Assembly: GCA_002269645.1 (NCBI GenBank)
Contig: NIVC01000362.1
Coordinates: 124,001 to 188,000 of the forward strand
Direction: 5' to 3'
DNA: 64,000 nt
DNA from: Macrostomum lignano
Taxonomy: Eukaryota
Shown here in pieces: positions 29,531 through 61,187 of the stretch (position 1 is the first letter of the stretch; each line of letters begins with the position of its first letter). The position numbers were made by a program, and so were the translations under genes. The notes beneath the pieces were generated by a model. That model did not search any database. It was not told the origin of the DNA and saw only the letters and a list, made by a program, of their open reading frames with translations.

Positions 29531-32500
29531 TTAACGAAACTTGCTAGACATCCAGTTATGGAATTGATGTATCTTCTTTTTAACAGCTGAAACAATCGGC
29601 TTGTTAATGTACTTCTGGTAGCGCTCGTACACCCGTTTCTCATTGTCTACGATGCTGTTCAGTATGGTGTCGTCACGCAGGCTACCTGTGCAGGCGGCCA
29701 GTTCACGGATGTCCTGCAGCTGCTGCATCCTTTTCGCATAGCCTGGGCGCCGGTTCATCCTCTCTGACTCGATCAGCTTGTCGATGTAGTCGACTTCACT
29801 TAGCGGGTCCGGTTTCAAGGCGATTTCTTTCAGCTTGTCGATGCACTCCTTGCACTCCACTATCAGTCCAACTAAGGTTGACTTTTTAGCCAAATAATCC
29901 TCGTAAACCTGCTGGACCAGCTGTTTGGCTGTAATCATCTTGCCTGAAGCGTCTTGGTAGCGAGCCTTCAGTTCCTGTGAAGTTTTAGTTACCACCTGGC
30001 TCTGGATCTCAATTCGGTAAGGCATGTTGCGGTGCATGGTCCAGTCACATGCGCCGGGACACACGTGGCACTTGCCGTCTGTCATGGCTGCGCACTTTGA
30101 TTTGTCCTTGTCCTCCGGAATTTTACACGGATAATGGCAGGTCCTGTTGCAAGTCAAACAATTCGTGATGTAGGTACCAGCTGGTATGTCTACATGAACG
30201 GCCTTTTCTTCTTCGACGGAGTAAGTGAAGTCTTTGTTGCGTTTGATGTCAGCTGAGTGTCTCTTAATCACGTCGATCTCAGCCTCTAGGCGGTTTAGTA
30301 CTCCTAGACTCAGGTCTATTTGAGTTTTTATTGCTACAATTTTCACCTGTAGTCGCTCGCGCGCTTGAAGAACATCTTTTGTCAGAGTCAGGCTTTTAGC
30401 TTGCATGCCCTGCACATGCTGAAAGAAGTCCTTGAAGCTTTCCATGCCCATATCCCAGAACAACTTATTGAAACTGCCAGCCATACTGCCACCTTGCGAC
30501 TTCTTGGCGAACACAGCCGAGTTGTTGAACTTGATGTGCATATTGTAGGGAATTTTGGCTTCCTTAAGTGACTCTAAGACCGGTGGTTCATTGGCATCCG
30601 CGAAGGTCACAAGAATATAGATGCTACCGCCGACGTCTCGTCCGAACAGAGACAGAATCGAGTCAAAGACGTACCGCTGAGTCGGCGTCAAACGAGAGAC
30701 ACTAGACGGCACTACAAAGCCGACCGCATCCAAGTGATCGATTCCACCGGGAGCGGAGAAGAATGCTCTAATTCTGTCCACAATCTTCTGGTCGTTCACG
30801 ATGCCCTCGGTGTCGCCAAACCCGGGCGTGTCTACCAAAGTAAACGTGAATGGATGGCGAGAACCTTCGTGCCGGTGAAACGTGTAGGAAGTGACCCACT
30901 GAGTCTGGCTAGCTGACTGAGATTGGCTGAGCTCCTTCTCTTTCGGATCAGCGACAATTCGCATTCGGAATTCGTCATCGTAATTCACGCCGAACAAGTA
31001 ATTCACCATTGAGTTGATCAGAGTGGTCTTGCCAGACCCCGTCTCTCCAACGATCATAATGACTTTTTCTTCCGACTGCTGACAAGCGTAATAGTCAGAG
31101 CAGCCTCTGTACTCCATTCCGCGCACTTGATTTGCGACATCGTTCATCGTTCGGTCCATTTGCAGTTCGTACACGGCTGGCACACTTTTGGAATCTTGGT
31201 CGGCTACTTGAGAGAACTGCAATGCTGTGTACTTTGCAACTTCTTGAGTCGAGTAGTCAGCCTTGACTGCGTAAGGGTCACTTGGTTTGCCTGCTGTCTT
31301 GTCCGAGTACAGTGAAGCTGCCGTTACGAGGTAGTCTCCATTGCCATATATAGGAACAGCAACAACTGTGTCAGTTGATTCGAAGTTTCTGTCGCAGATG
31401 AGAGCTCCTGATACTCCATCCGTAACTCTAACTTGATACCCAACGTGATCGGAACTTTGACCTGAGGATTTGCCTTTCTGTAGTTTAACTTGAATAGCGA
31501 ACGGTGAAATTGCTTTAGCTGAGCTGATTGTGGGCGCGTCAGTCTCCAAAGTCTCAACTGGCTCTAGGTTAACCAATTCGCCATAGCCGAGCTCACGAAC
31601 GGTTGAATAGCTGACGGAGTACTTCGTTTTTGGCAGAAGAGCTTTCAAATTTAGCATTATCATTTGGCTATCGTCAAAGTTGCATTCAATCTCGTCAATG
31701 CGATTTGATGTAGCACAGCGCCAAGTTACAAGCACGCCTATTACAGGGTTGTCCGCACTGTCAACAGAGGGCTTGCGAAATAGTAATTCAATACAGTCGC
31801 TCGATACACTGCCTACTTCAACTGTAACTGGAATCAGGAATGAATCAATGCTAGATAGAACAGCGCGTTGGTCTTTTAGAATGCAAAAGCGGCAATCAAA
31901 GTGTTCCATTTCTTCGTGAATTACTTTCCAAGAAAAGATGAAATCTTTACGTCGCTGATTAGCAATTTGAAAATTGTGTAACGTCGACAGCTTGCTGCTT
32001 AGCATTTTCAGCATTAGTTGCATATCGAACTGTTCTAGAAAAGCTTCGACAGCTAGAGGCTTGGGCGCATGCTTTGGAAATAGTAGTCTGACTTGGCACT
32101 CAAGCCGACAATCTGTGCATTCAATTGATTTCCCAACGCCATCGATGTGACGTAAAACTGACAAAAATGCCCTCAATTCAGGCAGCCAATCGATGGACGC
32201 CTGTCGAAGGACAAGCTTGCTCAGCTTCTCTGCATCACGATAGCTTGACTTCAGCAACTGGTGGTTGATTATATACTTGTTCTCAGTAACTTGCATGACA
32301 GCTGTTAAAATGTTACACAAGAAAATAGCATCCTTGAGCAGCTCATCAGCAATTATCGTTACAAGGATACGTAAAGTGGCTCGAGTTTCGTACAATGCTG
32401 CCAGAACGCTACTAATCTGCTGGTTAAGATGAGTCTGCTTCTGGTTCGCGATGTTGTTTAGCCTAAACAAAGCTGTTGTGCGGCTGTCACTGTTGGTAGC

Positions 32501-32607
32501 TTCGGCTTGTACAAGACGCTTAAATTCGTCCCAGTTGCAATCTTTTGTTTGACCATTCGAAGCGAATGCCGTGATGCTTGTGGATTGCGCCTGTGACGGG
32601 TCAGCAT
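29531..32607 (-). CDS. Large helical + 2xFN3 + septin/AIG1-like TRAFAC GTPase + coiled-coil/Cys-rich protein (main exon)
   Basis: Open frame from the acceptor TTTTCAG at 32608 to the stop at 29531. G1 GETGSGKT, G3 DTPGFGDT, G4-like TFAD and KFNNS. FN3 signatures (LKALLPKTKYSVSY; GYQVRV..DYLVTAASL). C-terminal CxxCxxxCHxxC module. The first exon is uncertain. Confidence 0.85.
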
Positions 32608-33841
32608 CTGAAAATTTTCAAACATTTAAATGATTACTTGTTGCTGGGAACAAGAAATTGTTTTATTTGATACGCCGGTACTAGACTGACTGTCACAGGG
32701 GCATTGGGTTTTAATTAACCAATGGAGTTTTTGTGTTTGTATCTATTTTATCATTCTTACCTGACTGTATAACACTACGTGTAACAGGGTAACAGAGATG
32801 ATTAAAAAATTATTAAAACCAAAGAGTCGAGCTGTGACATGCATTTTTACGAGTTTTAGGTACTTGGAATGTACATAGAATAAAAACTTTATACACAATC
32901 CTAATTTTCTCAACGGAAAGCTTTATAAATGAGCATTGGCTTTGCCTCCTATCAAAAGCAATAACAATTTTTGTGCTGAAATAATGAAAACTTCCTATCT
33001 CTGTAGTATATTTTATCAAAAAACCCGCCTCCTAAAATTTTCAAGAAGCTTAGTTTCCCGTCCTACTTAAGTTGTCCTTGAAAAAATGCCTAACCATGTT
33101 GTGATTCAGATAGATTAATATACAGGTTTCGTGGGTCACTTTTAGTCACTAAAAACCTAATTGTGTTTTTAATTTCCTACATTGGTGCGGCCCAACACCA
33201 GAAAAAGCAGAAAAAACTTTACAGGCTTACAGTTCTGTCCTTGATTGAGTTACAGAATTTACGACTTTAGGAGTTACAAACATTACGTTTGGACAGAGAA
33301 AATAAGTAACTGATCAAGAATTGAGCCAAGTTTGAAGTCAATCGCTTCACGTGGAATGGCAGCCGAAGGTCAGTCAGTTTTAAAACACATTTTATAATCT
33401 GGCCAGATAAAAGAAGGGAAGCGAGGCGGAGGTTGGGGTGGTTGCCTCGCTGAATAAAACAAAACTATAAAAGTGCACAGCGACGTTCAGGATTAACATT
33501 AAAACACAAAATTTTACACGATTGTGTCATAATAGCTGAATATTGTTGCGTCAAAGTTGAATAGCATTGGTAAAAGTGGAGCAACGCTATGGAGGATTTA
33601 GCGAAAAGTGTACTTTTAGCAACTTCCTGCACTTTTAGGTACAAGTACTTGAAATCAGGAAATTTTTAAAAGCTGAAAGCCTTCTTCATGGTGAGTTTTA
33701 GGTAGGTCTAAACTTTGGTATAATTAATTTGTTTGAGCCGTTTGGGACTCCATAGCGATGTAATTTGTACACAGACAGATTAGAGAGTTTTAATTTTATA
33801 TTTATAGACTTGATAGGCAAACTAGGTAGAAAAGAACTCAC

Positions 33842-34283
33842 CATCGTTTGTAAAACCATAGACCACAAAGCCTTCGAAAACCTCAACAATAGTGTCTGGA
33901 GCAATGGTCTCATGCTCTTCACCATCAATTTGAAGCAGACTTCCATTCCTGCATAAAGCTCCAATGACAATGTACTTTGGAAATTCATTTCTTTCCCAAA
34001 GAACTTGTAGAATAGCAGACACAGTATATGATTTAGGAAACAGGCTATATATAAGATTGATAGCCTGGAAAGGTGATAGTCCAATGGCTGCAATGTCTTC
34101 AAGAAAAGTAGTAGTTCTTTGAATGCATAGCACTAGTTTTTGATTTAACTTTTCCATTGCAAACTTTGTTTTGCTTGATGGCTTTGGAAATGTGTCATCC
34201 CAAAAACTATACTTTAGTCCAATAGATGGTATTTGTTTGCTCAATGTTTGAATCAATTTGAATGATTTTTCAGCCAGAGCCAT
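33842..34283 (-). CDS. Probable upstream coding exon of the GTPase gene (147 aa, unrecognised domain)
   Basis: Acceptor TTTCTGCTAG 17 nt before the ATG at 34283. Strong donor G/GTGAGT after 33842 in phase 1, which joins in frame to the phase-1 acceptor at 32607 (predicted 1172 aa). Confidence 0.45.
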
Positions 34284-35294
34284 GGTAGCATTCAAAGATG
34301 CTAGCAGAAATATTATATTTATGTTTAGATTTTATGATTCAAATGATGGATATAGCTTATATTAAGAGAAAAAAAAATAAAATATCAATAAATAATTTTA
34401 GATTTAAAGTACTTCATTTCATAAAATAATATCTAGCTATTTACATTATTGCTATGCAACATTTATATTGACTAATTAATGGATATAAACAAAATGGGCT
34501 CTTGGACTATATTTTAAGCTATATAACTAAAAGCCATTTCAATTAGCTAGAATGTGTTAATATGAGCTTTATAAATTTTATAGTCTTAACTACATTAAAA
34601 ATTTCTGCAAGCAAGGATCTATTGTTTAAAAAAAGTATCAACTTGTTGATTTGCTCCTTTTAATTAATAATTGAATTTTATCATATCAAAAAATTCCCTA
34701 ATATACAATTTAAAAAAATTCTCAAGATGGTAATTAGTATGGTATAGCTAGAAGCAAGCCATTATTGAGATTATAAAAATAACTTAAATATGTATTGACA
34801 CGCTGTTTCGTTCATAAACTGACAGTTTTTCACTGAATTAACATAATCATAAAGTGCAACTATGCGTCTGTTGATCATTCAACTTGACTCAGATGAGCCA
34901 AAAGTCAAAAACGCGACTACATGTATTAAAATTAATAAAATCATGTCTCCCAATATATTTGCCAGAAAGCAAAAAATAAGATTAGAAAACACGCTACATA
35001 ATATGGTAATAATGCAGAAAGAGCAAGACTTTAAACATGGTAAATTACGTTAAGTACCTGATCAATGGCTCGATAACTATAGTACTGTCGATCAGCTTGA
35101 CGATATTTAAAAAATGAAAACGAAAATCGAAAAATTTTGAAGTTATTATAAACTATGAAAATATAAGATTCATTTTCTTCTTGAGCGTTTTAAAAAGGAT
35201 TATTATACAGGGTAAGACTTTGTATCAAAGAACTAGCCTATTTTAGCATATCATTTGTTTAACTTAAAAAACGTAAAATTTTCCTTTTTTAACA

Positions 35295-35380
35295 TGTTAT
35301 ACATCTCTTATTCCTGTCTGCCACTCGGGAGCCAATTCCCAGTGCATAGCGAATCAAGACTTCGTTCTCGAGTCATTACA
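35295..35380 (+). mobile_element. Short (86-bp) LTR-like segment, TGTTAT...ATTACA, followed by a PBS
   Basis: TG...CA imperfect inverted termini. An 18-nt tRNA-complementary PBS starts 1 nt downstream. No partner LTR seen in the window. Confidence 0.55.
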
Positions 35381-35381
35381 A

Positions 35382-35432
35382 TGGCGACGAGGATGGGATG
35401 CGAACCCACGCGGGGAAACCCCAAATGGATTA
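35382..35432 (-). other. Copy of the 3' 51 nt of mature tRNA-Ser(GCT), including CCA (extended primer-binding site)
   Basis: The minus strand reads TAATCCATTTGGGGTTTCCCCGCGTGGGTTCGCATCCCATCCTCGTCGCCA: anticodon 3' stem, type II variable arm, T arm, acceptor strand and CCA. The 5' half of the tRNA is absent. Confidence 0.75.
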
Positions 35433-35559
35433 ATCCAGCGCTGTGGCACGATGCATGGAACGCGCGTACGAATGGTGCATACGTAGCATGGGGGAAGTGT
35501 TCAGAAGGGGTGACTCCGGTGAGTCAGTGAGGGGAACAAACAGAGTGCAAACAAACATA

Positions 35560-38500
35560 GTCAGTGGGAGCGGCAGACCATATGGCCAGGACTGCGGAGC
35601 GATCCCCAGCCCAGGCCATCACATCGGATGCCGCCGGCGGCCGAGTGTCCGTCGTCCGAGTCGTCCTGCGGCTGGGCCACTGGTGGGGCTGTGGCCGCGA
35701 TCTCGGCAGCGGCAGCGGCAGCGGCAGCGGCAGCGGCAGCGGCAGCGGCAGCGGCAGCGGCAGCGGCAGCGGCAGCGGCAGCGGCAGCGGCAGCGGCAGG
35801 CAGGTGCACCGGTGTCTCGGAGCCGCGGGCTGGCAGCGATAGCAGCTGATCAGTGTGCCGCCGCATGAGAGTGCCGTCTGCACTCACGGTGCAGTTTCGG
35901 GCCCCGCCAGACTCGACAGTGCCCTCTTGCCAACGGTTGCTAGTGGTGGTGCTGTAATCTCGCAACAGCACTCGGTCTCCAGGTCGGAACATCCTGGCTT
36001 GCCTGGGCGACTGTTGAAGCGCTGACTGCTGCTGCTGCTGCCGGTTGCTGACGAGCGAGGGCGTTAGCAGATCAAGCCGGGATTGAAGTCGGCGCCCGAA
36101 GAGCAGCTGGCTGGGAGCCGAGCTCGTGGCTGAATGCGGCGTATTGCGATAGGCGAGCAGAAATTGCTGCAGAGCTTTCTCAGACGGTCCTGATTTCTTC
36201 AGGTACTGTTTTAACACTTTCACGAACCGTTCAGCTTGTCCGTTTGTCGCCGGATGGAATGGCGCTGAAGTCACGTGCTCGATGCCGTTGATCCTCAAGA
36301 ACTCGGCGAATTCTGACGACGTGAACTGGGCTCCGTTGTCCGATACCAGAGTCCGCGGCAGGCCCTGGCACGCAAAGATCTCGCGAAGACAGTTGATCGT
36401 CTTGGCTGACGTCATGCTGGTCAGCTGCTTCACCTCCGGCCACTTGCTGTGCGCGTCGATAAGCACCACGTCCGTTCACTGGCCCAGCAAAGTCGATGTG
36501 CAGTCTGGACCACGGCTCGGACGGGAAGGGCCATGGGTGCACTGGCGCCTTGGGCGGATCAGCCTGGTTGAGCCGACAGGTTTCGCATGCCTTGACGGAG
36601 GTCTCCACGTCCTTGTCCAGGCCGGGCCACCACACGTAGCTGCGCGCGAGCGCTCTCATGCGGCTGGCACCGGGGTGAGCTTGGTGCAGTTCGCCGAGGA
36701 CCATAGGGCGGAGTGCCGACGGAACGATGACCCTGGATCCCCACAGCAAGCAGCCTTGTTCGATTGAGAGCTCGTGCTGTCGGCCAGAGAAAGCTTCGAG
36801 ACCGTCTGCAGCTGCAGGATCCGGGAGCCAGACTGCAGACACAGCAGCACCCTGCCGAGCTGCGCATCAGTCCGCGTCTTCTGTGCGATCACCTTGGCAG
36901 TCAGAGCCGAGCCGACCTCTACGTCGATGAACGGGGAGTTCACGGCTGTCTCCTCGATTAACTGATCACCGAGGGGAAGGCGAGAGAGCGAGTCGCAGTT
37001 GCCATGCCTCGCCGTCGGTCTGAACTCCAGGCTGTAGTCGTAGTTGGAAAGCCGAATGGCCCAGCGCTGCATGCGGGCTGCAGCCTGTGCCGGAATGGCC
37101 TTGCGCTCTCCCAGTAGACCAAGGAATGGCTGGTGGTCAGTGACGATGGTGAAGCGTCTCCCGTACAGGAACTGGTGAAATCTGTGCAAGCCGAACATAA
37201 TGGCCAGAGCCTCTTTGTCCAGTTGAGAGTAGTTACGCTGTGCGGGGGTCAGGCTGCGGCTTGCGAAGGCGATAGCTTGACCTTGGCCGCCGATCCTGTG
37301 AGACAGAACCACCCCCAGTCAATATGGCGAGGCGTCGCACTCCAAGTACAGTGGCAGCTCTGGGTTGTAGTGCACGAGCGCACTCGAGGACAGCAGCAGT
37401 CGCTTGGACTCGTTAAAGGCCTGTTGCTGCGCATCTCCCGGCCCATGCCCACTTGGTGTTCTTGGTCAGCAGCTGGTTCATCGGCGCCACGACGGTTGAC
37501 AAGTGCGGCATGAACTTCGAGTAATGGGTTAGCATGCCCAGGTAGGCGCGCAGCTGGCTGACATCCTTTGGAGCAGGTGCGTTCTGCACGGCTGTGACCT
37601 TGTCAGGCAGAGGTTTCAGCCCGTGTGCGTCGATTCGATGACCGAGATACTCCACCGAGTCTTGAAAGAACAGGCACTTGGCCCTGTTCAGTCGAAGGCC
37701 AGCGTCCTGAAAACGCTGCAGCACTCTAGTCAGGTTCTGTTTGTGCTGCGCCTGAGTCTTGCCTGTGAGGAGAATATCGTCAACGAACACCTGGACACCG
37801 TCGAGATCGCCCAATAGCGTTTCCAGAGTGCGCTGGAAGATGGCGCTGGCCGAGTTAATGCCAAAGGGCAGTCTGTTGAGTTGAAACAGGCCTCTCGACG
37901 TGTTGATGACTAGGTAGGTACGGCTCTCCTCGGACAGTGGCAGCTGCAAGAACGCGTTCGACAAGTCGAGTTTTGTTCATTTGCATCCTCCGCCGAGCTT
38001 GGCGAAGATGTCCTCAATCCGCGGCAACGGATAGTGCTCAGGCTTGGCCGCGGCGTTGAAGGTCACCTTATAATCGCCGCAGATGCGAATCTCGCCATTC
38101 GCTTTCACCACTGGGACGATCGGAGGAGCCCAGTTTGAGTGTTTGATCGGCGTGATGATGCCCTCGGCCTCGAGTCGTCTCAGCTCCTCGTCCACACGCT
38201 CCCTCAGCGCGTAAGGCACTGGCCTGGCCTTAAAAAATCGTGACGTGGCCTGCTCGTCCACCTGCAGCTTGACTTCGCCGTGGCGATAACACCCAAGTCC
38301 GTCAGCGAAGACTTCAGAGAACTGCTGCATCAGGTCGGTGGTTGCGGAGCTGGAGCTGACCGAGTTGACCTGAGCCACGATTGCTTGCCAGTCCAACCTT
38401 AGTCGAGCCATCCAGTCTCGTCCAAGAAGAGCGACATTGCCCTGGGAAACCACGAGCAGTGGAAGAATTTCGTTCTGGCCATTATAGCTCACTGAGACTT

Positions 38501-39200
38501 TGGCTTCGCCCAGTGGTTGGAATTGCTCGTTGGTGTACGTGCGCAGCACCATCGTGGTGGGCTGTAGGCGCAGTCCTGGAAGTCTCTCATCCACCATCCG
38601 CTTTGGAATAAACGTGACGGCTGACCCGGTGTCTAGCTCAAACGGGCAACTACGACCATCAATATCTAGCGTTACCGTCAGGGATCGGCGTGATCGTGGT
38701 CCAACGTAAAAAATTGAGCCTTGGGTGTCCTGCTCCGGTGCCGGTGCAGTGGACTCCAGCTTCTTGACCCTGGCTGACCTGCAGACTTTCTGGATGTGAC
38801 CCATTTTACCGCAAGCATGACACTTGGCGTCGCGGAACTTGCAGCTTTGCCGATCATGACGTCCACCGCATCCGGCGCAAGGTTGCTGCTGAGGCGCGTG
38901 CACTGAGGCAGAGTGGCGGATCGGTTGCTGCGGATGGGCATTGCCGTCGCTGGCACCCCTGCTGATAGCTGCGACCGTCTCGGAAGTTCTTGGCGCGATT
39001 TCGCTAGCCTCCATGGCTGACACCGTTGTGACCATCAGCGCGTACGTCAACTTCGAGATTTCTAGCAGTTTTGAGCGAAAAGCATCGCTCCGAAGGCCGA
39101 AAACAGCTTGATCGCGCAGTCTCTCCTGCAGCGTGTTGCCGAAGTTGCAGTGCAGAGTGGCTGCTTTGAGCCCGGCCAGGAAAGTAGCGAAGTCTTCCCC
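35560..39200 (-). mobile_element. Ty3/Gypsy (Mag/K02A2.6-like) retrotransposon internal region, frameshifted, gag 5'-truncated
   Basis: Gag zinc knuckles (CHACGKMGHIQKVC), protease FELDTGS, RT FVDDILL, RNase H (YSQLDKEALAI), integrase (HQAHPG..C..C, DAHSKWPEV, DNGAQF, NGQAERFV), split over several frames. Confidence 0.93.
35705..35800. repeat. (GCAGCG)n hexamer run
   Basis: About 15 perfect units. Encodes poly-Ala in the integrase frame. Confidence 0.95.
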
Positions 39201-39659
39201 CGGCAAGACTTATTCCCCCGGAAATCCCCCGGCAATCCAACTAAATTATTCGAACCATGTAAATTTTAACATCTCAAGCTTTACTTACTTTTCAAATTTA
39301 AATACCTCCAAAGAAATGCGTATTTCCTTTGGTTGTTAGATTGCTGCGAAGACCGCAGTGGATACACGAGTATTCCTCTCAGGGCTGCCAATTGACAAAA
39401 AAGATGACGTGATCAAAGCAGTTAGCAAACGGCCGACGAAATAAAACAACCATGAGAGTACTCGTACTACATCCCAAAGACTTGCTTCCGTCGACAGACT
39501 TTTACCTCATGATCAACGACCAGATAAAGAATCCAGCTCATGGCTGCAGGCTGGATGAGACAGAGTGGAAAGGAAAGAAAATGACGATTAGAAAAGGGAA
39601 GAATGGCGAGATAGGGGATGACAGAAAGGATATAAAAGATAAAAGCAGAGAGGAGCGCC

Positions 39660-44049: not shown

Positions 44050-46530
44050 TGATCGAAATTACATCGAGCTAAATCTATTTAAGAGGCTTCAGAGCAACCT
44101 GAGAAGGCTGCGCCGTGAACCCGCACTGCTGCAGGAGTACCACCGCTTTCCGATGAGCCAGAAAGAAGCTGGAATAGTGGAGGAGGTTCCCGACGGAACG
44201 CACCATCTTGTCCACTACTTGCCTCAGCGAGCAGTGATTCGTCCTGAAGCAGAGTCGACGAAGGTCAGAGTAGTTTTCGATGCCAGTGCTAAGCAAGATC
44301 GGTGGAGCTCGTCCTTAAATGAGTGCCTGGAGACTGGATCGTGTTCGTTGGTCGAGATTCCTCGTCTTCTTCAAGCATTCCAGTTTCATCCGATCGCTCT
44401 TACAGCTGATATTGGGAAGGCGTTTCTTCAGATTCACATTGCTGAAGAAGATCGGGATGCACTCGGTTTCTCTGGCCACAGGATCCAAGGCGAGCTGAAT
44501 CGCCACTCGTTGTTCTTAATGACGCCGCTTTGGTATTCGGACTCACCAGCTCACCTGCGATTCTGGAGACGGTCATTCAACACCATTTAGCATCTCATCG
44601 GGACCAGGATGCGCAGTTCGTGGACAAAGTATCGAAAGAGATCTATGTGGACAATCTAATCTCTGGGTGTGCAAGCGAACGGCAAGCCATGGAACTCATC
44701 CAAAAATCCCGTCACGTCTTCAGCCAGGCGGGAATGAATCTACGCCATTGGCAGTCCAACAGTAAAGCGGGTTTTGGTCGCAGTTCGAGCTAGCGCTACA
44801 GACCAGGACATTCTGGCTCCAGCCCTGTCAGTAGAGACTCACAGAATGACGGAAGACCACGCGGGAGCTATTCCTCCGCCTCATTGGGTGAGGAGGGCGT
44901 GTTGTCGAAGGTCCTTGGGTTGCACTGGGAAACCGGATCGGACGTGTTCGTGCTTCGGTTCTCACCACCTGAGGAGTTACTCAGAGCTACGCAATCCAAG
45001 CGAGTCATGCTAAAGCTTCTGGCACGTGTCTATGATCCTCTCGGCTTCCTAGTTCCACTGCTGACTTGGCCGAAAACTATGTATCAGATGCTCTGTCTTT
45101 GCAAAGTTGCTTGGGATTGCCCGCTGGATGAGCCGACTGAACAGCTGTGGCAGAAGTGGCTGCTGGACATGCTGAAAGCACGATTCCAGGTACCGCGGCT
45201 GGTGCTTTTCGCGACACGGGTGGTCCAAGAGATGCAGCTGCATGACTTCTGTGACGCATCCGCAAAGTGCTACGCGGCTTGTCGTCTCTACCTACGAGTT
45301 CAGTACACTGACGGTTCTGTCAGCTGTACCCTGGTGGCGGCGAAGGCCAGAGTGGCTCCACTATCGGCCCTGTCGATTCCTCGGCTGGAACTATTAGGTG
45401 CCCTGATACTGGCCAGACGAATGATTTCAGCCCTGAGTCAACATCCTCAAGTCCGCCAAGTTTTCTGCTGGACAGATAGTGCCGATACTCTGTACTGGAT
45501 CCGACAGCACAAGCCCTGGAAGCTCTTTTTACACAACCGAGTCTCTAAGATCCACCGGCTGCTTCCGGAGGAATCATGGCGACACTCGCCAGGCAATGAG
45601 AACCCTGCCGATGTTGCATCTCGCGGCACTTCGGTCGACAAGCTGAAGACTGATACCAGCTGGTGGTATGGTCCTGATTGGCTGATTCGACCTCCAGAAT
45701 GCTAGCCTGACCAAATCCTCTCTCAATCTAATCTCAGCAACGGCAGACGAGGAGCAGAAGCTATCAGCAGACAAATCATTCGTCCTACTCACTGATGTTG
45801 TTCCGGACATGGGACTGCATCGAGTTATACCAGATTCGGATTTCTCCTCCTGGACCAAGCTCATTAGGGTGACGGCTTACGTCTTTCGATTTGTCAAGAA
45901 TCTGCAAGTTCGAACTTCCGCAGCGGGGGAGGAGCGAGCAGGAACTTTGACAGCTGCAGAAGTGTCAGAAGCAGAGGAGCGTTGGCTGAAAGAGGTAAAA
46001 CGAATGAGTTTCCCTGCTGAGATTGCTCACTTTGAAAGGTCGACAGCATCTATACGGACCTCGCAAAGCAGCTGAATCTCTTCCTCGACACCAAAGGTCT
46101 GCTCCGAAGTCGCGGTCGATTGAGAGAATCAAACGTTGGTGCAGCTGCTGATTGCCCCACCCTCATCCCGAACAAGACTCATCTAAAAGTTCTCCTCATC
46201 CGAGACGCGCACAGCAAAGTTTTGCACGGGGGAGTTCCAAGCACCCTGTGCAAACTTTTGGCTGATCCGTGGCAGGCAGCGAGTGAAGGCAATTCTTGGA
46301 AAATGCGTCGTCTGCAGGTGTCTTCAGGGACTCCTGTTCGCTGTGAAGCAAGTTCCTGCGTTGCCAGAATCTCGCGTGAAAGCAATAAGAGCGTTCGAGT
46401 GGAGCGGGCTCGACTACTGTGGTCCGGTCAAGCTAGGAGAGAAGACACTGCACTGTCGAGAAGGGCTACATCTTGGTGTTCACCTGCGCAGCAACGCGAA
46501 CGCTTCATCTAGAACTAGTGAAAGACCTAA
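44050..46530 (+). mobile_element. BEL/Pao LTR retrotransposon pol fragment, frameshifted
   Basis: KVRVVFDASAK, ADIGKAFLQI, FGLTSSPAIL, IYVDNLISG, YDPLGFL, HDFCDAS, IPRLELLGAL, NPADVASRG, WWYGPDWL, and integrase GLDYCGP. Confidence 0.92.
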
Positions 46531-50477: not shown

Positions 50478-52331
50478 ATGGGCAATCCAGTGTCAAAAAT
50501 AATGGACAGTTTTTCTAAGAAGAACCAAGAAACCATGGCTGAAATGCAAAAGCTAACAGTAAGTTCTTGTTGTAATTCTGTGTTCAGTAGTTAGTTATTA
50601 AGTGATTAATAATTGGCTGTCATGAAAAATCTTTTAAAATATAAACAAGTTGCAATTATAAATTTGTTGACTATAGTCTACACTTGTTTGATTGCTAAAT
50701 TAAGAGCAAAAGTACAAACTGTACAATTACTGTAGATACAATTTTCAATATATTTTACTTACAGTAGAAACATCAGAATATTACACCTAAAATTGATAAG
50801 TAAGTCTGTTATTTAAAAAGTGCCTGAAAAGGGCCGTTTTATTGACTCAATGTTGTATACCAAATTCAATCAGTTGTGCCGTCAATTGGAGATGCAAAAC
50901 GCTATGCGAGAGCGCATGATGGCCGCCCAGATTGCCCGAGGCCGCGAGCTGTTCAATTGGACGGCCAGTTTTTATGCGCTGGCTTTTGCTGGCGCCGCCG
51001 CAGCAGCCAGGCATGGCAAGAAAGTCGCCATGGCCCCAATCGTGCCGTTCACCTTTATCATTGCCTACCAGTATGACCTGTGCTACGGGTCTAAGATGCA
51101 GCGAATTCGACGTGAGTTGCTTGTAAAAATATCCTGGAGTTATTGTTTATGCATAGCGTACATGTCATTGTATGCGTGCTGCATGGGCCTACAAGACATG
51201 GTAAAAAGGCATTCTGTTGGAGATCGAATTTTATATAGGCCTAATAATGATGACTCAGTTGAGTCATTTTATCATTATCATTACTCAAGCGCTAATTCAT
51301 TATTTCAATCATCACTTAGACGCCGATTCACTATTCTGTCGTTAATTAGGCACCGATTCACCATTTCATCATTGATTAGGCGCCGATTTACTATTTCATC
51401 ATTGCTTAGGCCTCGATTCACCATTTTATCAATAATTAGGCCCCGATTCACCATTTCATCATTGATTAGGCGCCGATTTACTATTTCATCATTGCTTAGG
51501 CCTCGATTCACCATTTTATCAATAATTAGGCCTCGATTCACCATTTTATCAATAATTAGGCCCCGATTCACCATTTCATTGATTAGGCGCCGATTTACTA
51601 TTTCATCGTTTCTTAGGCGCCGATTCACTATTTCATCATTGCTTAGGCCCCGATTCACCATTTTATCAATAATTAGGCCCCGATTCACCATTTTATTATT
51701 AATTAGGCCCCGATTCACCATTTTATCATTAATTAGGCCCCGATTCATCATTTTATCAATAATTAGGCCCCGATTCACCATTTTATCATTAATTAGGCGC
51801 CGATTCACCATTTTATCATTAATTAGGCCCCGATTCACCATTTTATCATTAATTAGGCCCCGATTCACCATATTATCATTAATTAGGCGCCGATTCACCA
51901 TTTTATCATTAAGTAGGCCCCGATTCACCATATTATCATTAATTAGGCGCCGATTCACCATTTTATCATCAGTCAGGCGCCGGTTCACAATTTATCATCA
52001 GTTAGGCGTCAATTTACCATTTCATAATTAATTAGGCACCGATTCACCATTTCATCATTTGGGCTCCCGTTCACCATATTTAATAGGTCCTAGTTTAGAC
52101 TTTTATCAATATGTGCCCAGGCGCCTTTTCACCAATCCATAATGATTGCCGAAATCATTAGGCATCGTTTCACTACAAAAATCAATTTGCTTTTGTTAAA
52201 ATTGTCCAACTCAAGGCATGGCGGAGAATATTCTGGCTGACGAGTTCGACCTGACTAGCATGCCGAACGGCATGGTGACTCTTGACGAAATCGACCGCAG
52301 GCGTTTGGCTAGCCAATCTCCGGCCAAATAA
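50478..52331 (+). CDS. PLGRKT: Plasminogen receptor KT (C9orf46) homolog, 3 exons (50478-50558, 50874-51111, 52216-52331), 144 aa
   Basis: Spliced MGNPVSK...RQLEMQNAMRERMMAAQIARGRE...PIVPFTFIIAYQYDLCYG..RIR/RMAENIL...PNGMVTLDEID. Matches the PLGRKT motifs I recall (RQLIMQSEMRERQMAMQIA, PIVPLSFILTYQYDLGYG, EAEDIL, PRGMITF). Confidence 0.88.
51310..52050. repeat. 30-bp minisatellite (AGGCCCCGATTCACCATTTTATCATTAATT)
   Basis: About 24 units in PLGRKT intron 2. The unit is stop-free in one frame on each strand, giving spurious long ORFs. Confidence 0.95.
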
Positions 52332-54330: not shown

Positions 54331-56741
54331 ATAGTGCCCCCATGTACCCCCTTTCACGTGATGTGCTGGCGCCGTACCTCACACCTGCCAGTTACTCTAG
54401 CCTATCGAGCTCACCAATATTTGAGTTCGTCCTAGCTCTGCCCGTCGGAGAGCAGCTGAGTACACGCGTTCGTCCGCACAGAGACAATCGAATTACATCT
54501 GGGCCAGTCATGCTGGGATGTTGCAAGTACACCAGTAGGTTATAGCGATCACTAGTCATATGCTTACAGTGGATTGCAGGAATCAATGTCTGACGCGTCT
54601 TCCCCGAGTGCTTGAACAGAGTAAAAAGCCAATTTTATACGAGGCATATGGCACCAATAAGCTGGGCGAGCCTCTTACCTCTAGTTGTCAGAGCACGGTG
54701 CACCAAATGAGGCAGTCACCTGACTTTGGTCGCTAACAGCTGACAAACAATATGGTAGAGACTGCGCTCTCTGTACTTTGCACAATGCATGGGCTTAAAG
54801 GCAGCAAAAATAAAATTTGAAAAGCTACAGTTTGTCGAACAAAATTCTATTCGAAGTGACTCTTCCTAACCTATAAATGACTGTTTTGCTTTTTTCCTTG
54901 ACTCAAGCGATGCACTATGGAGAAGCAATTGAATTTTTCAGTAAGCTGCACAGAATATATTCTGTGGCCTTTAGGTTTAAGTGACTTTAAGGGGCAATTA
55001 GCAACTCTCAAGATGGTCATTGGTTTCATTGCTGGATGAGGAGGAGCTGATGAGTCTGAAGTGCAGAGAAACGCCGCATCTTTTCTGAAGGATGTGGAAG
55101 AAATTACATCCGCTGGTTGCAAAAAGCTAAAATTTTAATGGAAACCAATTACTGCCAACAAGTGGATCGAGTTCATCAGCAAGCTTTGAATTTGAATTAC
55201 GAATTGTCCTAGCGAGGTTACCGCTCCGGCCGGACTACTGTAGGAGACAGTATAGTCAGTAGCTGGAGCTGTTGGGGCTGATGATGGCACCGGCGACGCC
55301 GTTGAAGGTGTCGCACTTGTTGGTTGATCCGTTCGTACATGTGCTAGATCGGTGCTAATTGGCTGTTTCGAAAAATGTCAATCCCAGTGTCTGGCTGCAC
55401 CAGTCACTGGGAAAGGCGGCAGCCGCCGTCTCGACGCTGCATGGTGCATGTACAACGGAGAGCTGTGATATGTTGTGCATGTTCATTGATCAGTGTTACA
55501 GTTCAGTTCATCCATGTACTGAATTTATATTATAACTAAAAATTATTCTCAGGCAAGCAAATTAGGTTCGCAATTAGTCTATGCTCTATGGCTCATGCTG
55601 CTGGGGTCCTATGGGACATGGGGAATAGGCCGAGGCATAACTTTCCGCTGACAAATAAAATCACTTGCAGTTTTGGCAATACATAAGATCACTTCGGCGA
55701 AGTGTTCTCAGCGGTTGGTGAATCGGTTTATCGAAATCGCGGCACGCTACGATGTCTGCTGCATTCAAGAGAGCGACAGACCATGCAGCTTCGGCTATAG
55801 GAAGGTGTGAATTAGCGTCGATGATAGAGATTCCTGCGGTCGTGCTCTTATAGACTGTCTTCTGCTATGAGCGACAGCAGTCGCGGAGGCTGTTTTCATC
55901 CTGGCGATGGCTTTAAAGATCTATCAACCCGATGTGATTGTGATGGATCCGTCTAAATGAAGGGTGTAATAAATCTTGTCTTTTTTCGTTCGTTTTTAGT
56001 AAATAGTACAGTGACAGTGTGCTTATTCTGTCTCGACAAAAAGTGCCCAGTCTGCACCAATCAGAATGTTGGGTCGCGCTTGCATGCAGCTCTTCAGCAC
56101 GTGCTCAACTCCTCGAGCTCTGCTTTTCCGGTTTTCTTAGCAAAGCGACTTCTGCAAGAAATGGTCCAATCTTTTGGTAAGTTAATAAGCCAGGTAAACT
56201 GCTAAATCATGTGTCGATCATGCGGATGCGAAACACTTAAAATCGGGAGAATGTATTATATGTAACTGAATAAGTACGCTTAAAAAACCACATCAAATTA
56301 TACACGGCAGAGTTCATATTTTGTACAAATCGGGTCGAATGGTAAATTAGCGTGGAATCAAATATAATTTTATCTATCGTTGATCTCATTAACATTTGCT
56401 AGTGAAATGACCACTTTAGAAATCCAAATTCCGGAAGGGTCGGTTACCAAACTGTGATTATTCAATGTATCGTAACTGAAGTAAGAAATAGCGTAAGATG
56501 CAAACAAGCTACTTTCAGCAATATGCACTTGTACTACGTGAGGTTACTACAAGTTGAGCTGGTTTTGTTCGATTCTAGCTATAGTTCGCATGCACTTAGC
56601 TAGGACTCGGAAGTTACGCCAAGTTTTGTTGCCTTGTGCTTCATTTACAACTTAATATATATACTCGTAATTTTAACGGAAATTATACGACATGTACAGG
56701 ACAGGATCTCGTACATGTACGGGAATAAATGTATTTAAAAT

Positions 56742-58766
56742 TCAACTAATAACGCACTCCGAATCAGACTGAGGATTTGAATCCCGATTTTGTCGCCTGG
56801 TGGGCCTTTCGTGCCAAGCAGAACCGAATGCACCGACACCAGGAAAACCTGCAGAGAGGCGTCCATGTACATCACCGGCGACTACTCCTACTGCACCAAA
56901 TGTCGGCGGCGTTGTCGGAGGTTCCTGCCTTCGTGACTGCCATGCAAACCTAGTATAATCGGTTCTATCCTCCACTCGTGCATCGATAGCTTTTGTCAGC
57001 TCAGTCAACTTGAAGGAATCTTCCGGATCGAGCCGCTTGGACCCAAGCTTGTCTGTAATGAACTGATCCAAGTCGACGCTCTGGTGCAGGCCTTTCAAGC
57101 ACCTGTGCGCTTTCACGAGTTCGTAGGCCGTTTTCTGCAAAGCCATCTTCGCGTCCATTCCAAGGTGATACTTGAGACGCCTCACAGCACCGCGCTGGTT
57201 CGGATTTTCTCCATACTTCTTGCTCACTCTGTCAATGGGAACAGATTCGTAGTATTCAAACTCCCTCTGTTCGGTGCTGGTGTTTCGGTGAAGTCTCCAG
57301 TGGCAGGCGCACTCTTTACAATACCCATCACTGTTCATGGCACAACACTTGGCTTTATCCTCGTTATTGGGATAGCCACAGTCTGCATGGCACGTTCTTC
57401 GACACCTGATGCACCAAGTGATGCAGGACCGATCATCCCGACTTCTTTCTTCGATTCTGGTGCGCTTAATTCTAAAGTGGCTCTGTCCTGGGCACATTTG
57501 CTCTTGAAGCTGCTTGTTTGAGTCGTGTATGCTGAACAGGTCTTCGATTTCCTTTGCCAATCTTTCTGCTTTTGTCTCAAGTTCTTCCGCGCTTGTAGCG
57601 TCAATTCCTTGTCGAAGCTTTGCATTTAACTCACAGAGGTCGGTAGTTTGGCGACCAAACATGTTCAAAGAGGTGTCCATGCTGCTGTAGGTGAAGACGC
57701 TGTCTAAACTGCCGGCGTGATGAGCTTCAGCAAACTCGTCCGAAGTGCGATGATTCACAAAACTTTGTTGCATCCGCTGTGTGTACTCGCTTTCATGAGT
57801 CTCCAGCTCTCTCTTGTAGCCACGCAGTGTCTCTCCGATTGAAATGTCCAACTCTGCCTCCCGGCTGATCTTGTTCAAAAGGTCCTTGGACTGTTCAAGG
57901 CCGGCCTTCAACGCTTGAAGATACTGGCAGGCATCTTCCAGATGCTGCGTTTTTGCCATTGGGACTGAAGTTGGAACCGACGGGCAAAAGTAGCGCAATG
58001 GAGTGAGATGAATTTCCATTGCTTTGTTTGCATCCCTTGAATCTAACGATTTAAAATACTCTAAAACATCTGGTGGCTCTCTCATTGTCTTCCTTGGCTG
58101 CTTGAAGTCGGTGTGACATTCGATCTGATAACTGCCAGAACTTGAGCGGTTCGACAAGTCAAATTTAGCGAATGATCTGGCAGACTGCCCAGCATCTCTG
58201 ATCCACTGTTCCACCTTCCAATCTACCAGTTCATGACAGTCAGATGTTGCTCGCTCGAAGAAGCTGGACGCATTGGACCAGCCTTTGCAGACAATGAACG
58301 CCTTGCCTCCGTACCGGATTCCTGTCACAACGTGTGTTGCACCAGTGCTTAGTAACTTCTTCTCATTGTCTACAAGCTCGTTGCAGCACTGAAGCTCCTC
58401 AAACGCACCCTTCACGTCGTACTGCAAAGTGACGCTTCCACCGGTCTCGGTGGAGCTTGCCTCGGTGACGTATTTTGCTGATCCTGTCATTGACTTCTCG
58501 CCGAGTTTCCACCAGGCCAATTTGAACTCAATGCAAAACCTCAGCTGGGCGTTCAGCCCCAGCTGTTCCGCTCGGCGCTTCGAGCTGTACTCGTAGTCCA
58601 GAGAAAATCTCACGCTGGGTGCATCATCCAGCCGAGTCGTCATTCGCCGAATTCGATCAGATGGCCAGGCCGACTGTGCAATGATCCGGTGCTGTCGGAT
58701 GTCATACATCTGTCCGAGCTGAAAGGCCCGGCCCAGAGACGGGATGCACTCCGGTTGAGTCTGCAT
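56742..58766 (-). CDS. Stonustoxin-like MACPF/CDC-domain protein with Cys-rich module and C-terminal CaaX, 674 aa, intronless CDS
   Basis: N-terminus PSLGRAFQLGQMYDIR..., GSAKYV, VTLQY and ATHVVTGIRYGGKAF match the stonustoxin/neoverrucotoxin motifs (PALGRPFTLGMLYD, GSAKYL, ATHVVTSILYGANAF). Cys module CIRCRRTCHADC..C..CKECACHW..H. Ends in CVIS. Confidence 0.8.
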   Translation of the reverse strand: MQTQPECIPSLGRAFQLGQMYDIRQHRIIAQSAWPSDRIRRMTTRLDDAPSVRFSLDYEYSSKRRAEQLGLNAQLRFCIEFKLAWWKLGEKSMTGSAKYVTEASSTETGGSVTLQYDVKGAFEELQCCNELVDNEKKLLSTGATHVVTGIRYGGKAFIVCKGWSNASSFFERATSDCHELVDWKVEQWIRDAGQSARSFAKFDLSNRSSSGSYQIECHTDFKQPRKTMREPPDVLEYFKSLDSRDANKAMEIHLTPLRYFCPSVPTSVPMAKTQHLEDACQYLQALKAGLEQSKDLLNKISREAELDISIGETLRGYKRELETHESEYTQRMQQSFVNHRTSDEFAEAHHAGSLDSVFTYSSMDTSLNMFGRQTTDLCELNAKLRQGIDATSAEELETKAERLAKEIEDLFSIHDSNKQLQEQMCPGQSHFRIKRTRIEERSRDDRSCITWCIRCRRTCHADCGYPNNEDKAKCCAMNSDGYCKECACHWRLHRNTSTEQREFEYYESVPIDRVSKKYGENPNQRGAVRRLKYHLGMDAKMALQKTAYELVKAHRCLKGLHQSVDLDQFITDKLGSKRLDPEDSFKLTELTKAIDARVEDRTDYTRFAWQSRRQEPPTTPPTFGAVGVVAGDVHGRLSAGFPGVGAFGSAWHERPTRRQNRDSNPQSDSECVIS

Positions 58767-59732
58767 GTTGAAGTCGTTCGTCAGAATTGCACTGAAATGT
58801 TCGGCAAATGATTGTTAGTGCGAGAAAAGGGTTTGCATCTTTTGAAAATGTAAAATTATAAAGTAATAGGAATAAAATCCTTTTTAAGGTTCTACCGTTT
58901 AACTTGCCCACTAGCGATTTCTCCAGGAAGGGTCGATGTTGTGTCTTGGGTTAAGGGAACTAAAAGTCTACTACAACAAAGGAGATACCAACTATTCTTC
59001 TCTCGCTGATATAATTCCTACTGCACTAATCAAAAGTAAAAAAAAACATAGAAAACAAATTTTGTTTAACAATCCTTATTTTTAATAGCATTTTTTCTGC
59101 AAGCAAATCTTTTGCTAAAAATCTGGATTACATGCTCGAAGTTTAGTGACAGCGAAAAAATGTACCTGTTAAAAATTTAGAATACCAAACACACATCACA
59201 CATCTAGTTAAATATAAATGAAAGTGTATTGTCCTCACAATAAGGAAATTCATGTTTGTTAGTTTTTTACCGATTTGTTCAAGTTAAAACTCAATTATAG
59301 AGCGCAATTTACTGAATAAGATCCACATGAGTGGTAAAAAAGTATACAGCAAGAATTGTATCTGATCTGAATAATTCGTAAAAACAAAAAACACTTATTC
59401 ATAGGTGCGAAAAAAACAAATTATATTAATTTAACAACTAAATAACGCGCTGGGTGGGTTATTATCGCTAAGCAGCAGTATGATATGCGTACGAACCGCG
59501 ACCTATTCTGTTTAACATGCTGTCGCAAGAAAACTGGTGCAAAAAATCCACGGCAAATCAAGTATAGTTGAAAAATTAACGAACTGTATAGAAATTTGTT
59601 GAAATTCCAAGGCAAAAAATCAACGTCTCCTCTACAATTTTGTCTGTTAGAAATAGCAAAATTTCGGCAGTTCACGATTTTACAATCGAATATTGTCGAT
59701 ACTCACAAACAAGGGTGCCGTCAATCTATAAT

Positions 59733-61187
59733 TCAGGAATCCGATGAGAGGTTCCGGAAGGTCACCTGCACTCCGGATGCGTCAGAATCAGGAACCTCGG
59801 ATTGCTCAACAGCTACTAGAGGTTGCACCAATTTGAGCTTTTGATTCCCTGGCGTGGGGCAATATTCTACTAACGTTTTGTAAAATTTCTTCTCGAGCTG
59901 TTTGTTGTTCCAGAGTTTCAATTCAACTTGGTGCTCGAACTTTTGCAGTTCAAACAATTTCATCGGGCAAGACAGGCAGTACATCTTTTGGTTTGGTTCT
60001 GTCATGCTCCTCATGATGAATTCGGCTCTCTGGGCCTGGCTTTTTATTATCTGGGCGCCAGCCTCCCGGAACTTATTGGAAATCACAACCAGAACGTCAC
60101 CGGCATCGGCGACTGCGGTGGCCCATTCCTGCAGGTGAGCGTACTTTTTTCCGGCGTCAAAAAGACCCGTTTTCAACTCAATTTTTCTCACACGATTGGC
60201 AGGCTCAGCCGTGTGATCTAGAACAGCTTCCCTCACAGCATCATCAAGGGAAGACTTGAATGATTCGAGCTCCTGAACTTCCGCTTCCAGCTTCTTCACC
60301 ACGTGAGTCCACGCTGTCGGTCTCAGCTTGTAAATAATTTCCTCCAGAGTAGTCAGAGCTTCTTTCAGCACATCGTAGCAGCGAACAGTTTTGCAGATGC
60401 ACGTGGGCGGTAGTGGCAGGGGCGCTGGTGGAGTGTCTTCAACCAGCAGTGACAGAGGAAGCAGGTTGACCGTCAGTGGCGATCTAGCTTCAGCAGCTTG
60501 GATTGTTTGAATGCACTTCATGGCTTCAATGAAGTTGGTCGGTGGGCTGGCCAGGTGGAAGTCTCCCTTGTAGGCAACTCGGATCTTCTGCATGACTTTC
60601 GTTTCCTCCGACGTCATGTCAAGCGAGGCAGCTCCAGAGATGCTGACCAACGATGCAAACTTGCCAATCTGAGCTTGCAAATTGCCTCCGGTTTTGTCGC
60701 TCGTTGCGGAGTCTTCTTTGTCCCGCTCGAAAAAGAACAGAGCGGCTCCGCCATACTGAATTCCCATTACTACGTGAGTCGCATCTTTGTAGCTCGCTGA
60801 GCTCTTCAGCTTCAAACCCGGTGGGACAACAAGTTCCCAATACTTTCCTTGAACTTGCAGTCGATATATGGCGCTCTCCGTCTCTTTCTTCTCTTTTAAG
60901 GTAGTCTGGTAGTTCCCGGAGCCGCTAGCGGACACTAGTCCCGATAGAATTGACAGCGACAGATTTCCGGTCACTTTTGTGCTCAGGTTTTTGCTGTTCG
61001 CTGACGTTTCTGTGACGATATCGGTCTCCATGCTGATGTTCTTAGTTTCGGTCAGCATAATCTGCATCTGCTCAGCGGTGAATAACTTGACTCCGGGGAT
61101 GATTTGGCTGGTCCTGCTGTTGTACAGTGCACCAAGGGTGAATGGATGGCCCACCGCAGGAATGGTGAGAGAGCTCGATGTTGTCAT
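59733..61187 (-). CDS. Stonustoxin-like MACPF/CDC-domain protein (second subunit), 484 aa from the ATG at 61187, intronless CDS
   Basis: IPAVGHPFTLGALYNSR..IIPG, LSLSILSGLVSASGSGNY, ATHVVMGIQYGGAALFFF and YKGDFHLASPPTNF align with the SNTX alpha/beta N-terminal domain. A helical region follows. No PRYSPRY domain is recognisable. Confidence 0.85.
   Translation of the reverse strand: MTTSSSLTIPAVGHPFTLGALYNSRTSQIIPGVKLFTAEQMQIMLTETKNISMETDIVTETSANSKNLSTKVTGNLSLSILSGLVSASGSGNYQTTLKEKKETESAIYRLQVQGKYWELVVPPGLKLKSSASYKDATHVVMGIQYGGAALFFFERDKEDSATSDKTGGNLQAQIGKFASLVSISGAASLDMTSEETKVMQKIRVAYKGDFHLASPPTNFIEAMKCIQTIQAAEARSPLTVNLLPLSLLVEDTPPAPLPLPPTCICKTVRCYDVLKEALTTLEEIIYKLRPTAWTHVVKKLEAEVQELESFKSSLDDAVREAVLDHTAEPANRVRKIELKTGLFDAGKKYAHLQEWATAVADAGDVLVVISNKFREAGAQIIKSQAQRAEFIMRSMTEPNQKMYCLSCPMKLFELQKFEHQVELKLWNNKQLEKKFYKTLVEYCPTPGNQKLKLVQPLVAVEQSEVPDSDASGVQVTFRNLSSDS

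Follow-up and report, generated by a model that had tools for sequence, protein, structure and literature searches.

Probable domain-loss paralogues of a stonustoxin-type MACPF-GTPase fusion family, including a tandem gene pair, in the flatworm Macrostomum lignano

What is known of stonustoxin-type MACPF proteins comes mainly from fish venom cytolysins. Septins, AIG1 and GIMAP proteins are nucleotide-dependent dimerising and oligomerising scaffolds, the GIMAPs being immune-associated, and guanylate-binding protein 1 (GBP1), a protein of cell-autonomous immunity, has the farnesylated CaaX box CTIS. [quoted passage not shown] Bacteroidotal CDCL short/long pairs are reported to be two co-encoded MACPF/CDC proteins that build one pore, one of which initiates it (PMC11169675). 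Here, we analyzed a 64,000-nucleotide stretch of Macrostomum lignano contig NIVC01000362.1 (assembly GCA_002269645.1), hereafter the window, in which three minus-strand genes, termed a, b and c, encode parts of a domain set that combines a stonustoxin-type MACPF/CDC domain with a septin/AIG1-like GTPase. A sequence-only reading of the window had proposed that the three are fission or deletion products of a single fusion ancestor and now assemble in trans as a pore-forming system. The three long open reading frames (ORFs) on which that reading was built were recovered at their reported positions (a, 29531-32470; b, 56742-58766; c, 59733-61199).

The locus is very probably a small family cluster whose genes are domain-loss paralogues within one large animal family, with a shared fusion ancestry and a c-b gene pair. 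In its full-length form, this family consists of a stonustoxin (SNTX)-type MACPF/CDC domain and a FAT-like helical domain, followed by FN3 repeats, a septin/AIG1-like GTPase, a coiled coil and a Cys8His2 module. Gene a has kept the FN3-GTPase-coiled coil-Cys part, with the MACPF domain replaced by a lineage-specific N-terminus; gene b has kept the MACPF domain and the coiled-coil/Cys part, has lost FN3 and GTPase through an internal deletion and has a CaaX box at its end; and gene c has kept only the MACPF domain, to which a new tail is joined. That c and b form a hetero-oligomeric, farnesyl-anchored pore is a tentative proposal, and the explanation as a whole, which blends this proposal with the descriptive part, is reasonably probable.

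The family was delineated by a full HMMER search with the M. lignano fusion protein P0004 as query, which returned 5768 library proteins at E <= 0.001, the threshold for counting, and 1620 at E <= 1e-30. Five domain seeds derived from P0004 were then mapped onto P0001-P0012, 146 other best cluster representatives and genes b and c. Within this mapped set, ~65 single chains carry an N-terminal SNTX-type MACPF domain and then the GTPase-Cys module, and 66 carry the GTPase and coiled-coil/Cys part only. A MACPF domain with the Cys module and without a GTPase was restricted to gene b and its paralogue P0011, and a MACPF domain by itself to gene c; among the proteins examined, the architecture of b (MACPF, Cys module and CaaX, no GTPase) occurred only in M. 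lignano. P0004 scores above the Pfam cut-offs for MACPF_SNTX, Stonustoxin_helical, fn3, AIG1 and Septin. The postulated descent from a MACPF-FN3-GTPase-Cys fusion is borne out within the same genome, where P0004, P0016 (encoded as a single exon) and P0044 are single-chain fusions, b is collinear with the fusion at both ends with the middle missing, and a shares 63% identity with P0004 over its C-terminal 546 aa, across the GTPase-Cys part. A proteome search for single-chain fusions, which the sequence-only reading had suggested as a check, found them in flatworm, crustaceans and fishes: beyond M. lignano they occur in Cherax quadricarinatus, Daphnia carinata and the fishes Gouania, Amia and Erpetoichthys (examples are PAA80612.1 from M. 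lignano, XP_053648736.1 from Cherax, XP_028328301.1 from Gouania and XP_057377823.1 from Daphnia). The named members carry only the labels "uncharacterized" or "FN3 domain-containing", and full-text literature searches found no paper on a MACPF/SNTX-GTPase fusion or its family.

The fusions of Gouania (P0033) and Cherax (P0025) contain Stonustoxin_helical and Thioredoxin_11 domains ahead of FN3 and GTPase. The family is therefore a stonustoxin MACPF-FAT-THX trunk in which PRYSPRY has been replaced by FN3-FN3-GTPase-coiled coil-Cys; the thioredoxin-like domain had no match in the M. lignano members examined. In the single chains P0024, P0035 and P0089, two MACPF-helical(-THX-FN3) units stand ahead of one GTPase-Cys module, which fits MACPF pairs as a recurrent working unit, and a double-MACPF gene of Daphnia carinata (L009, 10001-16362) is almost intronless and lies in a tandem array of three family members. 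Pairs of family members also share M. lignano contigs (P0002 with P0182; P0004 with P0022). Two further arrangements were seen: a GTPase-coiled coil-Cys protein without a MACPF domain in the data set of the foraminiferan Bolivina argentea (P0007, EukProt), where contamination is possible, and three tandem copies of GTPase-coiled coil-Cys in one protein of the coral Porites (P0013 cluster).

Gene a consists of two exons, not one, so that the single-exon coding sequence (CDS) first assigned to all three genes applies to the single ORFs of b and c but not to a, which has an extra exon at 33842-34283. The 979-codon ORF at 29531-32470 (minus strand) corresponds at 100% identity to a segment of GenBank protein PAA84769.1 (BOX15_Mlig027469g1; P0001, 1179 aa), and P0001 aligns to the window in two blocks, again at 100% identity. 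Residues 1-154 of P0001 match the window at 100%; exon 1, which starts at the ATG at 34283 (context ACCATGG), encodes residues 8-154 (MALAEK...GFTND) and the first base of codon 155. By sequence reading, a GT...AG intron of 1,234 nt (32608-33841) follows, with the donor G/GTGAGT at 33842/33841 and the acceptor ...TTTTCAG/ at 32608/32607, and the split codon G/AT across it restores ...TNDDADP... of P0001. An intron lies at the same position in the paralogue P0002. Exon 2 (29531-32607) runs up to and includes the stop codon; it codes for what remains of the N-terminal region, followed by FN3-FN3, GTPase, coiled coil, Cys8His2 module and a C-terminal helical part.

Of the domain order helical-FN3-FN3-GTPase-Cys proposed for gene a, everything but the helical part was retained. 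The first ~413 aa have no recognisable domain, were modeled by AlphaFold 2 (AF2) with per-residue confidence scores (pLDDTs) below 50 and match only M. lignano paralogues; this region, of which exon 1 is a part, appears from such comparisons to be lineage-specific, and a belongs to a two-exon subfamily that has it as its own N-terminal region. The AF2 model of the whole of P0001 is confident only from residue 414 onwards, where two 7-stranded beta modules (residues 414-605; 31256-31831, minus strand) reach pLDDTs of 65-84. The top PDB matches of these modules in Foldseek are tandem FN3 pairs (E 2e-9, probability 1.00). The Pfam fn3 match of gene a by itself is weak (E 0.03), and the FN3-FN3-GTPase-Cys order holds because of the modeled modules and their tandem FN3 matches. 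The G domain (residues 665-890; 30401-31078) exceeds the Pfam cut-offs for Septin (35.4 bits; cut-off 26.2), AIG1 (28.3; cut-off 27) and MMR_HSR1, and a profile of the family matched septins in the PDB at E 1.5e-8. Its P-loop GETGSGKT starts at 31048 and its G3 motif is DTPG. The G4 position reads TFAD, not the canonical N/TKxD or AKAD, and the Pfam and PDB matches end after about 85-160 residues, covering mainly G1-G3.

The remainder of gene a (residues 895-1130; 29681-30388) was modeled with pLDDTs of 65-88 as one long helix (895-937), then a Cys module rich in beta structure (949-1030) and a terminal helical part. A motif search located the core of the Cys8His2 module (C-x2-C-x3-CH-x2-C...C-x2-C...C-x-W-x2-H) at 30032-30160, and the module presumably binds zinc. 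Neither the Pfam scan nor the PDB profile search matched this coiled coil/Cys/C-terminal part, which is nonetheless a shared feature of the 5768 library proteins returned with P0004. As an a-paralogue starts ...SFDRQVNLGQQY, which resembles LGRPFxLGxLYD, a hidden degenerate MACPF/helical domain was considered for the N-terminus of a and rejected, as hhalign against a MACPF plus helix profile gave a probability of only 0.09%; tblastn at E <= 1e-3 found no MACPF pseudo-exon elsewhere in the window. Since its N-terminus shows no profile similarity to the MACPF and helical region, gene a is truly MACPF-less. Pfam searches with the N-terminus of a, the middle of b and the tail of c returned only noise (EAD9, mitofusin, ThiD2; E > 0.1).

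Gene b is a single ORF of 674 aa plus stop (56742-58766, minus strand) that is 87% identical to the annotated paralogue P0011; the exact ORF of the window has no GenBank annotation. The architecture SNTX-MACPF-helical-Cys-CaaX given for it stands for the MACPF, Cys and CaaX parts, and the helical part aligns with the family over a short stretch only. Its divergent stonustoxin-type MACPF/CDC domain (residues 4-260; 57987-58757) was identified with phmmer and hhalign: gene b matches the stonustoxin chain 4WVM_B at E 5e-11 over residues 8-344 and a profile of eight fusion-family N-termini with 99.2% probability (E 1.3e-19, residues 4-340). The Pfam MACPF_SNTX score of 21 bits is under the cut-off of 27. 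The core motif, ATHVVTGIRYGG, is directly followed by a 10-aa insertion, and there are other short insertions relative to the family. Beyond the MACPF domain, only the first ~80 aa align with the helical domain of stonustoxin and the fusions. Residues 393-600 (56967-57590) form a coiled coil, Cys8His2 and helical region homologous to the C-terminal module of a, with the Cys8His2 core at 57288-57413 and pLDDTs of 65-81. The sharing of this module by a and b, asserted from the sequence at the outset, is upheld by 53% identity over 49 aa (E 1.5e-11), and, of the GTPase-Cys half of P0004, b matches the Cys module and its flanks only (29% over 119 aa, E 1e-12). The C-terminal four residues form the CaaX box CVIS (56745-56756), which reads CTIS in the paralogue. 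FN3 and GTPase domains are missing from b, as are Pfam matches to Thioredoxin_11, PRY or SPRY.

Gene c is also a single ORF (59733-61187, minus strand), with 484 aa from the probable ATG at 61187 plus stop; the open frame extends to 61199. Its canonical stonustoxin-type MACPF/CDC domain (ORF residues 5-255; 60435-61187) matches stonustoxin alpha (4WVM_A) in phmmer at E 2.5e-33 over residues 8-236, the fusion-family profile in hhalign with 100% probability (E 3e-40, residues 5-255) and residues 2-244 of P0004 at 34% identity (E 9e-42), and is missed by the Pfam MACPF_SNTX model. The core motif of c, ATHVVMGIQYGG, and that of b align with the invariant A-T-H-x-V-T-G...G of the family (ATHVVTGIxYG[AG] in the SNTX form). 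A word-indexed search with c returned nothing; this reflects the sensitivity limit of the tool and does not make c an orphan, given its strong similarity to P0004, P0012 and 4WVM when compared directly. The helical part that had been assigned after the MACPF domain of c was not recovered: the tail (residues 256-488; 59736-60434) has no detectable homology, with no Pfam match and no hhalign match to the family profile past residue 255. Nothing of the family follows the MACPF domain, the Cys module being absent along with Pfam matches to Thioredoxin_11, PRY and SPRY. In a rough neighbor-joining tree of MACPF domains, built without support values, c groups with the M. lignano fusions. The possibility that c and b are exons of one gene was rejected, since each begins with the N-terminal motif of the family and the stop codon of c, which is kept at a second locus, is followed by an AT-rich spacer of about 970 bp.

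This second c-then-b tandem, with the same order, orientation and spacing of about 1 kb, was found on the contigs L001, L005, L006 and L007, which are 97-99.6% identical to each other and were therefore counted as one locus; it adjoins a giant Ig/FN3/kinase gene. When positions 56735-61193 were compared with the second locus, only the two CDSs aligned (91%), together with a 260-bp piece of the spacer (72%). Divergence between the loci is far higher in flanks and spacer than at synonymous sites (dS, ~0.16-0.17), an excess for which CDS-confined gene conversion, transposition of the unit with fast spacer turnover, or constraint on synonymous sites are possible causes. At the second locus, c is intact in L005 and L007 (481 codons) and ends at the same codon as c of the window. 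The ratio of non-synonymous to synonymous substitution rates (dN/dS) was 0.33 for the whole of c (p 4e-8), 0.24 for its MACPF domain and 0.43 for its tail (p 0.002), and 0.40-0.44 for the whole of b, 0.27 for its MACPF domain, 0.43 for its helical part and 0.40 for its Cys module, all significantly below 1. The last 70 residues of b are the sole neutral part (dN/dS 0.93), and the CaaX box (CVIS/CTIS) has been kept even though the tail preceding it is neutral. Given the recurrent tandem and purifying selection on both genes, c-b behaves as a conserved two-gene unit, and the pairing of b with c, as one component of the proposed split system, thereby gains partial support.

None of the three proteins has an obvious signal peptide, as had been noted before, and a crude Kyte-Doolittle hydropathy scan found no hydrophobic N-terminal or transmembrane segment in a, b or c. 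They therefore probably act inside the cell, and a working model of the c-b pore would start from cytosolic proteins. Through its farnesyl group, b would be held at a membrane on the cytosolic side, where it would recruit or nucleate c, whose canonical MACPF domain would join that of b in the way that stonustoxin alpha joins beta, giving a prepore-like pair and eventually a ring. The coiled-coil/Cys module of b, which follows the GTPase in full-length relatives, might mediate oligomerisation or docking, and the context is likely to be defence or regulated lysis. The simplest view of gene a is that it is a neighbouring paralogue that arose by local duplication, and it would act by itself as a GTP-dependent oligomerising scaffold rather than as an obligate third part; family members lie in tandem arrays elsewhere, so local duplication suffices to explain why a lies 22.5 kb from b.

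Several observations weigh against this model. With an alignment of eight sequences, the AF2 model of b had a mean pLDDT of 47, with the MACPF part below 50, and Foldseek with this low-confidence model gave no match at E <= 0.001 and only noise (TolC, E 0.03). The MACPF domain of b has diverged strongly and occupies a very long, unplaced branch of the tree, c and b are only about 22% identical, and b may form no pores at all. A CaaX motif by itself is no proof of prenylation. The c-like ORFs are frameshifted once in L001 (7437-8893) and at two or more sites in L006 (1472-2893), which may stem from sequencing or assembly errors or from decay, and none of the five copies of c has been given a gene model in the transcript-based GenBank annotation, although b-type models do exist (Mlig004669g1/g2/g4). 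Lacking annotation and with two copies frameshifted, c may therefore be weakly expressed or decaying in places.

These features of c also feed the alternative that survives best, namely that a, b and c are functionally independent paralogues, possibly partly decaying, from a family that duplicates rapidly, whose truncations are by-products of duplication and deletion and in which the adjacency of c and b reflects co-duplication. Truncated or fragmentary members are indeed common in M. lignano (P0022, 485 aa; P0180, 447 aa; P0005 and P0003 with internal gaps), and dN/dS values of 0.33-0.44 amount to only moderate constraint. However, every domain of b and c, including the novel tail of c, has a dN/dS significantly below 1, and the long ORFs remain open at about 9% nucleotide divergence. 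The retention of the CaaX box at the end of an otherwise neutral tail, and the confinement of homology between the loci to two CDSs in the same arrangement, likewise run counter to a pair without joint function, and we regard independent, partly decaying paralogues as an unlikely account.

Considerably less probable is the three-part split system in its original form, in which b and c make the pore and a serves in trans, through the coiled-coil/Cys module, as FN3 sensor and GTPase switch. Its appeal lies in the complementary domain sets of a, b and c, which together equal the full-length fusion, and in the coiled-coil/Cys module common to a and b. In addition, the order c, b, a is collinear with the MACPF-helical-MACPF-helical-FN3-GTPase-Cys chains P0024, P0035 and P0089, a hint of the Rosetta-stone type, and an a-type gene less than 25 kb from a c-b pair should be rare by chance (a rough estimate from a few dozen loci and a genome of several hundred Mb). 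The double-MACPF chains and the collinear gene order are the best arguments for the bolder readings, and remain hints. Synteny speaks against a as part of a unit with b and c: no a-type gene was present within the 7-10 kb covered on each side of the second c-b locus, beyond which one may still lie, and around the a-paralogue P0002 and the fusions P0004 and P0016 a radius of 10 kb contained no c- or b-type gene. In the window itself, the 22.5 kb between a and b hold two retroelement remnants and an opposite-strand PLGRKT ORF. Gene a is moreover a member of an established subfamily with two exons and an N-terminal region of its own, the proximity is accounted for by the tandem clustering that is usual in the family, and M. 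lignano retains intact fusions, so that there is no evident need for complementation in trans. As far as synteny tells, a split system acting in trans is thus unlikely for gene a. A more specific version, with a farnesyl-anchored c-b pore on the cytosolic side of a host organelle or pathogen vacuole whose assembly a would gate in trans by way of homotypic contacts between the shared coiled-coil/Cys8His2 modules, is harder still to credit; if true, it would be a naturally "unbundled" single-chain SNTX-GTPase protein and a first handle on the function of a whole uncharacterised animal family.

A secreted stonustoxin-like toxin against prey or predators, with b and c as subunits, is highly improbable: c is strongly homologous to stonustoxin, the tandem resembles alpha/beta subunit genes, stonustoxin itself also lacks a signal peptide, and two reports list SNTX-like transcripts as candidate toxins in nemerteans and cerianthids (PMC4986456, PMC7460484), but both b and c lack PRYSPRY and a secretion signal, and an intracellular membrane is suggested by the conserved CaaX box of b together with its module, which elsewhere accompanies a GTPase of cytosolic type.

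The sequence around the three genes contains the transposable element remnants and the opposite-strand PLGRKT gene that had been placed between a and b/c. A broken Ty3/gypsy element (35561-39206, minus strand) has integrase, RNase H, reverse transcriptase and protease in separate ORFs, and includes a microsatellite coding for poly-Ala/(Leu-Pro)n at about 35600-35850; a Pao/BEL peptidase fragment lies at 44884-45705 (plus strand), and G+C is raised to 0.50-0.59 across the 36-46 kb stretch. The DUF2368/PLGRKT ORF (50820-52031, plus strand, 403 codons) matches over its first ~100 residues only; the remainder is probably intron or read-through, so the true PLGRKT gene model is likely to be spliced. 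Elsewhere in the window are a prefoldin-like ORF recognised by eye (31-516, minus strand), a long Ser/Ala/Gln-rich gene with an annotated SET domain and a product of 1803 aa according to the GenBank annotation (10146-21116, plus strand), neither of which is related to the three-gene cluster, and two MAPEG genes. Beside or between the latter lie two tandem peptide-repeat ORFs (22136-22696 and 24674-25126, plus strand) with units of ...SHSVSISTSYI... and a ~33-aa unit ...LLLLGQPPRSSVAVAGPASQILSCCCWASLPDPQ...; they are probably minisatellite DNA and not genes.

The analysis shows that the combination of an SNTX-type pore-forming module with a septin/AIG1-like GTPase and a Cys module is widespread in flatworm, crustaceans and fishes, and this family, whose proteins lack a secretion signal, is itself a more valuable result than the three-part split model. 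The fusion architecture, as read from the sequences, suggests nucleotide-controlled intracellular pore formation, which, if true, would be of interest comparable to gasdermins or to the GBP coats of cell-autonomous immunity. The locus offers natural "dissected" variants of the fusion, with MACPF only (c), MACPF with the Cys module and a lipid anchor (b) and the GTPase without MACPF (a). RNAi and transgenesis work in M. lignano, and the locus is therefore a practical entry point to the contribution of each part.

Compared with known systems, the c-b pair is like stonustoxin in its homologous MACPF/CDC domains (E 2.5e-33 for c and 5e-11 for b), in being two divergent paralogues in tandem and in lacking a signal peptide, and the fish and crayfish fusions additionally share the helical and thioredoxin-like domains. 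In contrast to stonustoxin, b and c have no PRYSPRY, whereas the true fish SNTX-like protein P0012 has Thioredoxin_11 and PRY/SPRY; b ends instead in coiled coil-Cys-CaaX and c in its novel tail, and their identity is about 22% as against about 50% for alpha and beta. CDCL pairs and the complement membrane attack complex are a precedent for two different MACPF/CDC-fold proteins in one pore, but are secreted and extracellular, with neither a CaaX lipid anchor nor GTPase relatives. Septins and AIG1/GIMAP proteins (the paraseptin clade of TRAFAC GTPases) are the best Pfam and PDB matches of the G domain of a, with which they share the P-loop and DxxG; a differs in its noncanonical G4 (TFAD), its FN3 domains and its own coiled-coil/Cys8His2 extension, and is not a septin orthologue. 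The parallel with GBP1 lies in a cytosolic protein whose CaaX box has S as its last residue (b, CVIS; its paralogue, CTIS), in the presence of an oligomerising GTPase in the family and in the idea of lipid-anchored membrane assembly; it is one of analogy and not homology, as b has no GTPase, a has no CaaX box and the GTPase is septin/AIG1-like rather than dynamin-like. Closest of all is the fusion family, from which each of the three genes differs in missing part of the domain set and which is their direct parent, with a 63% identical to P0004, c 34% identical over the MACPF domain and b collinear at both ends.

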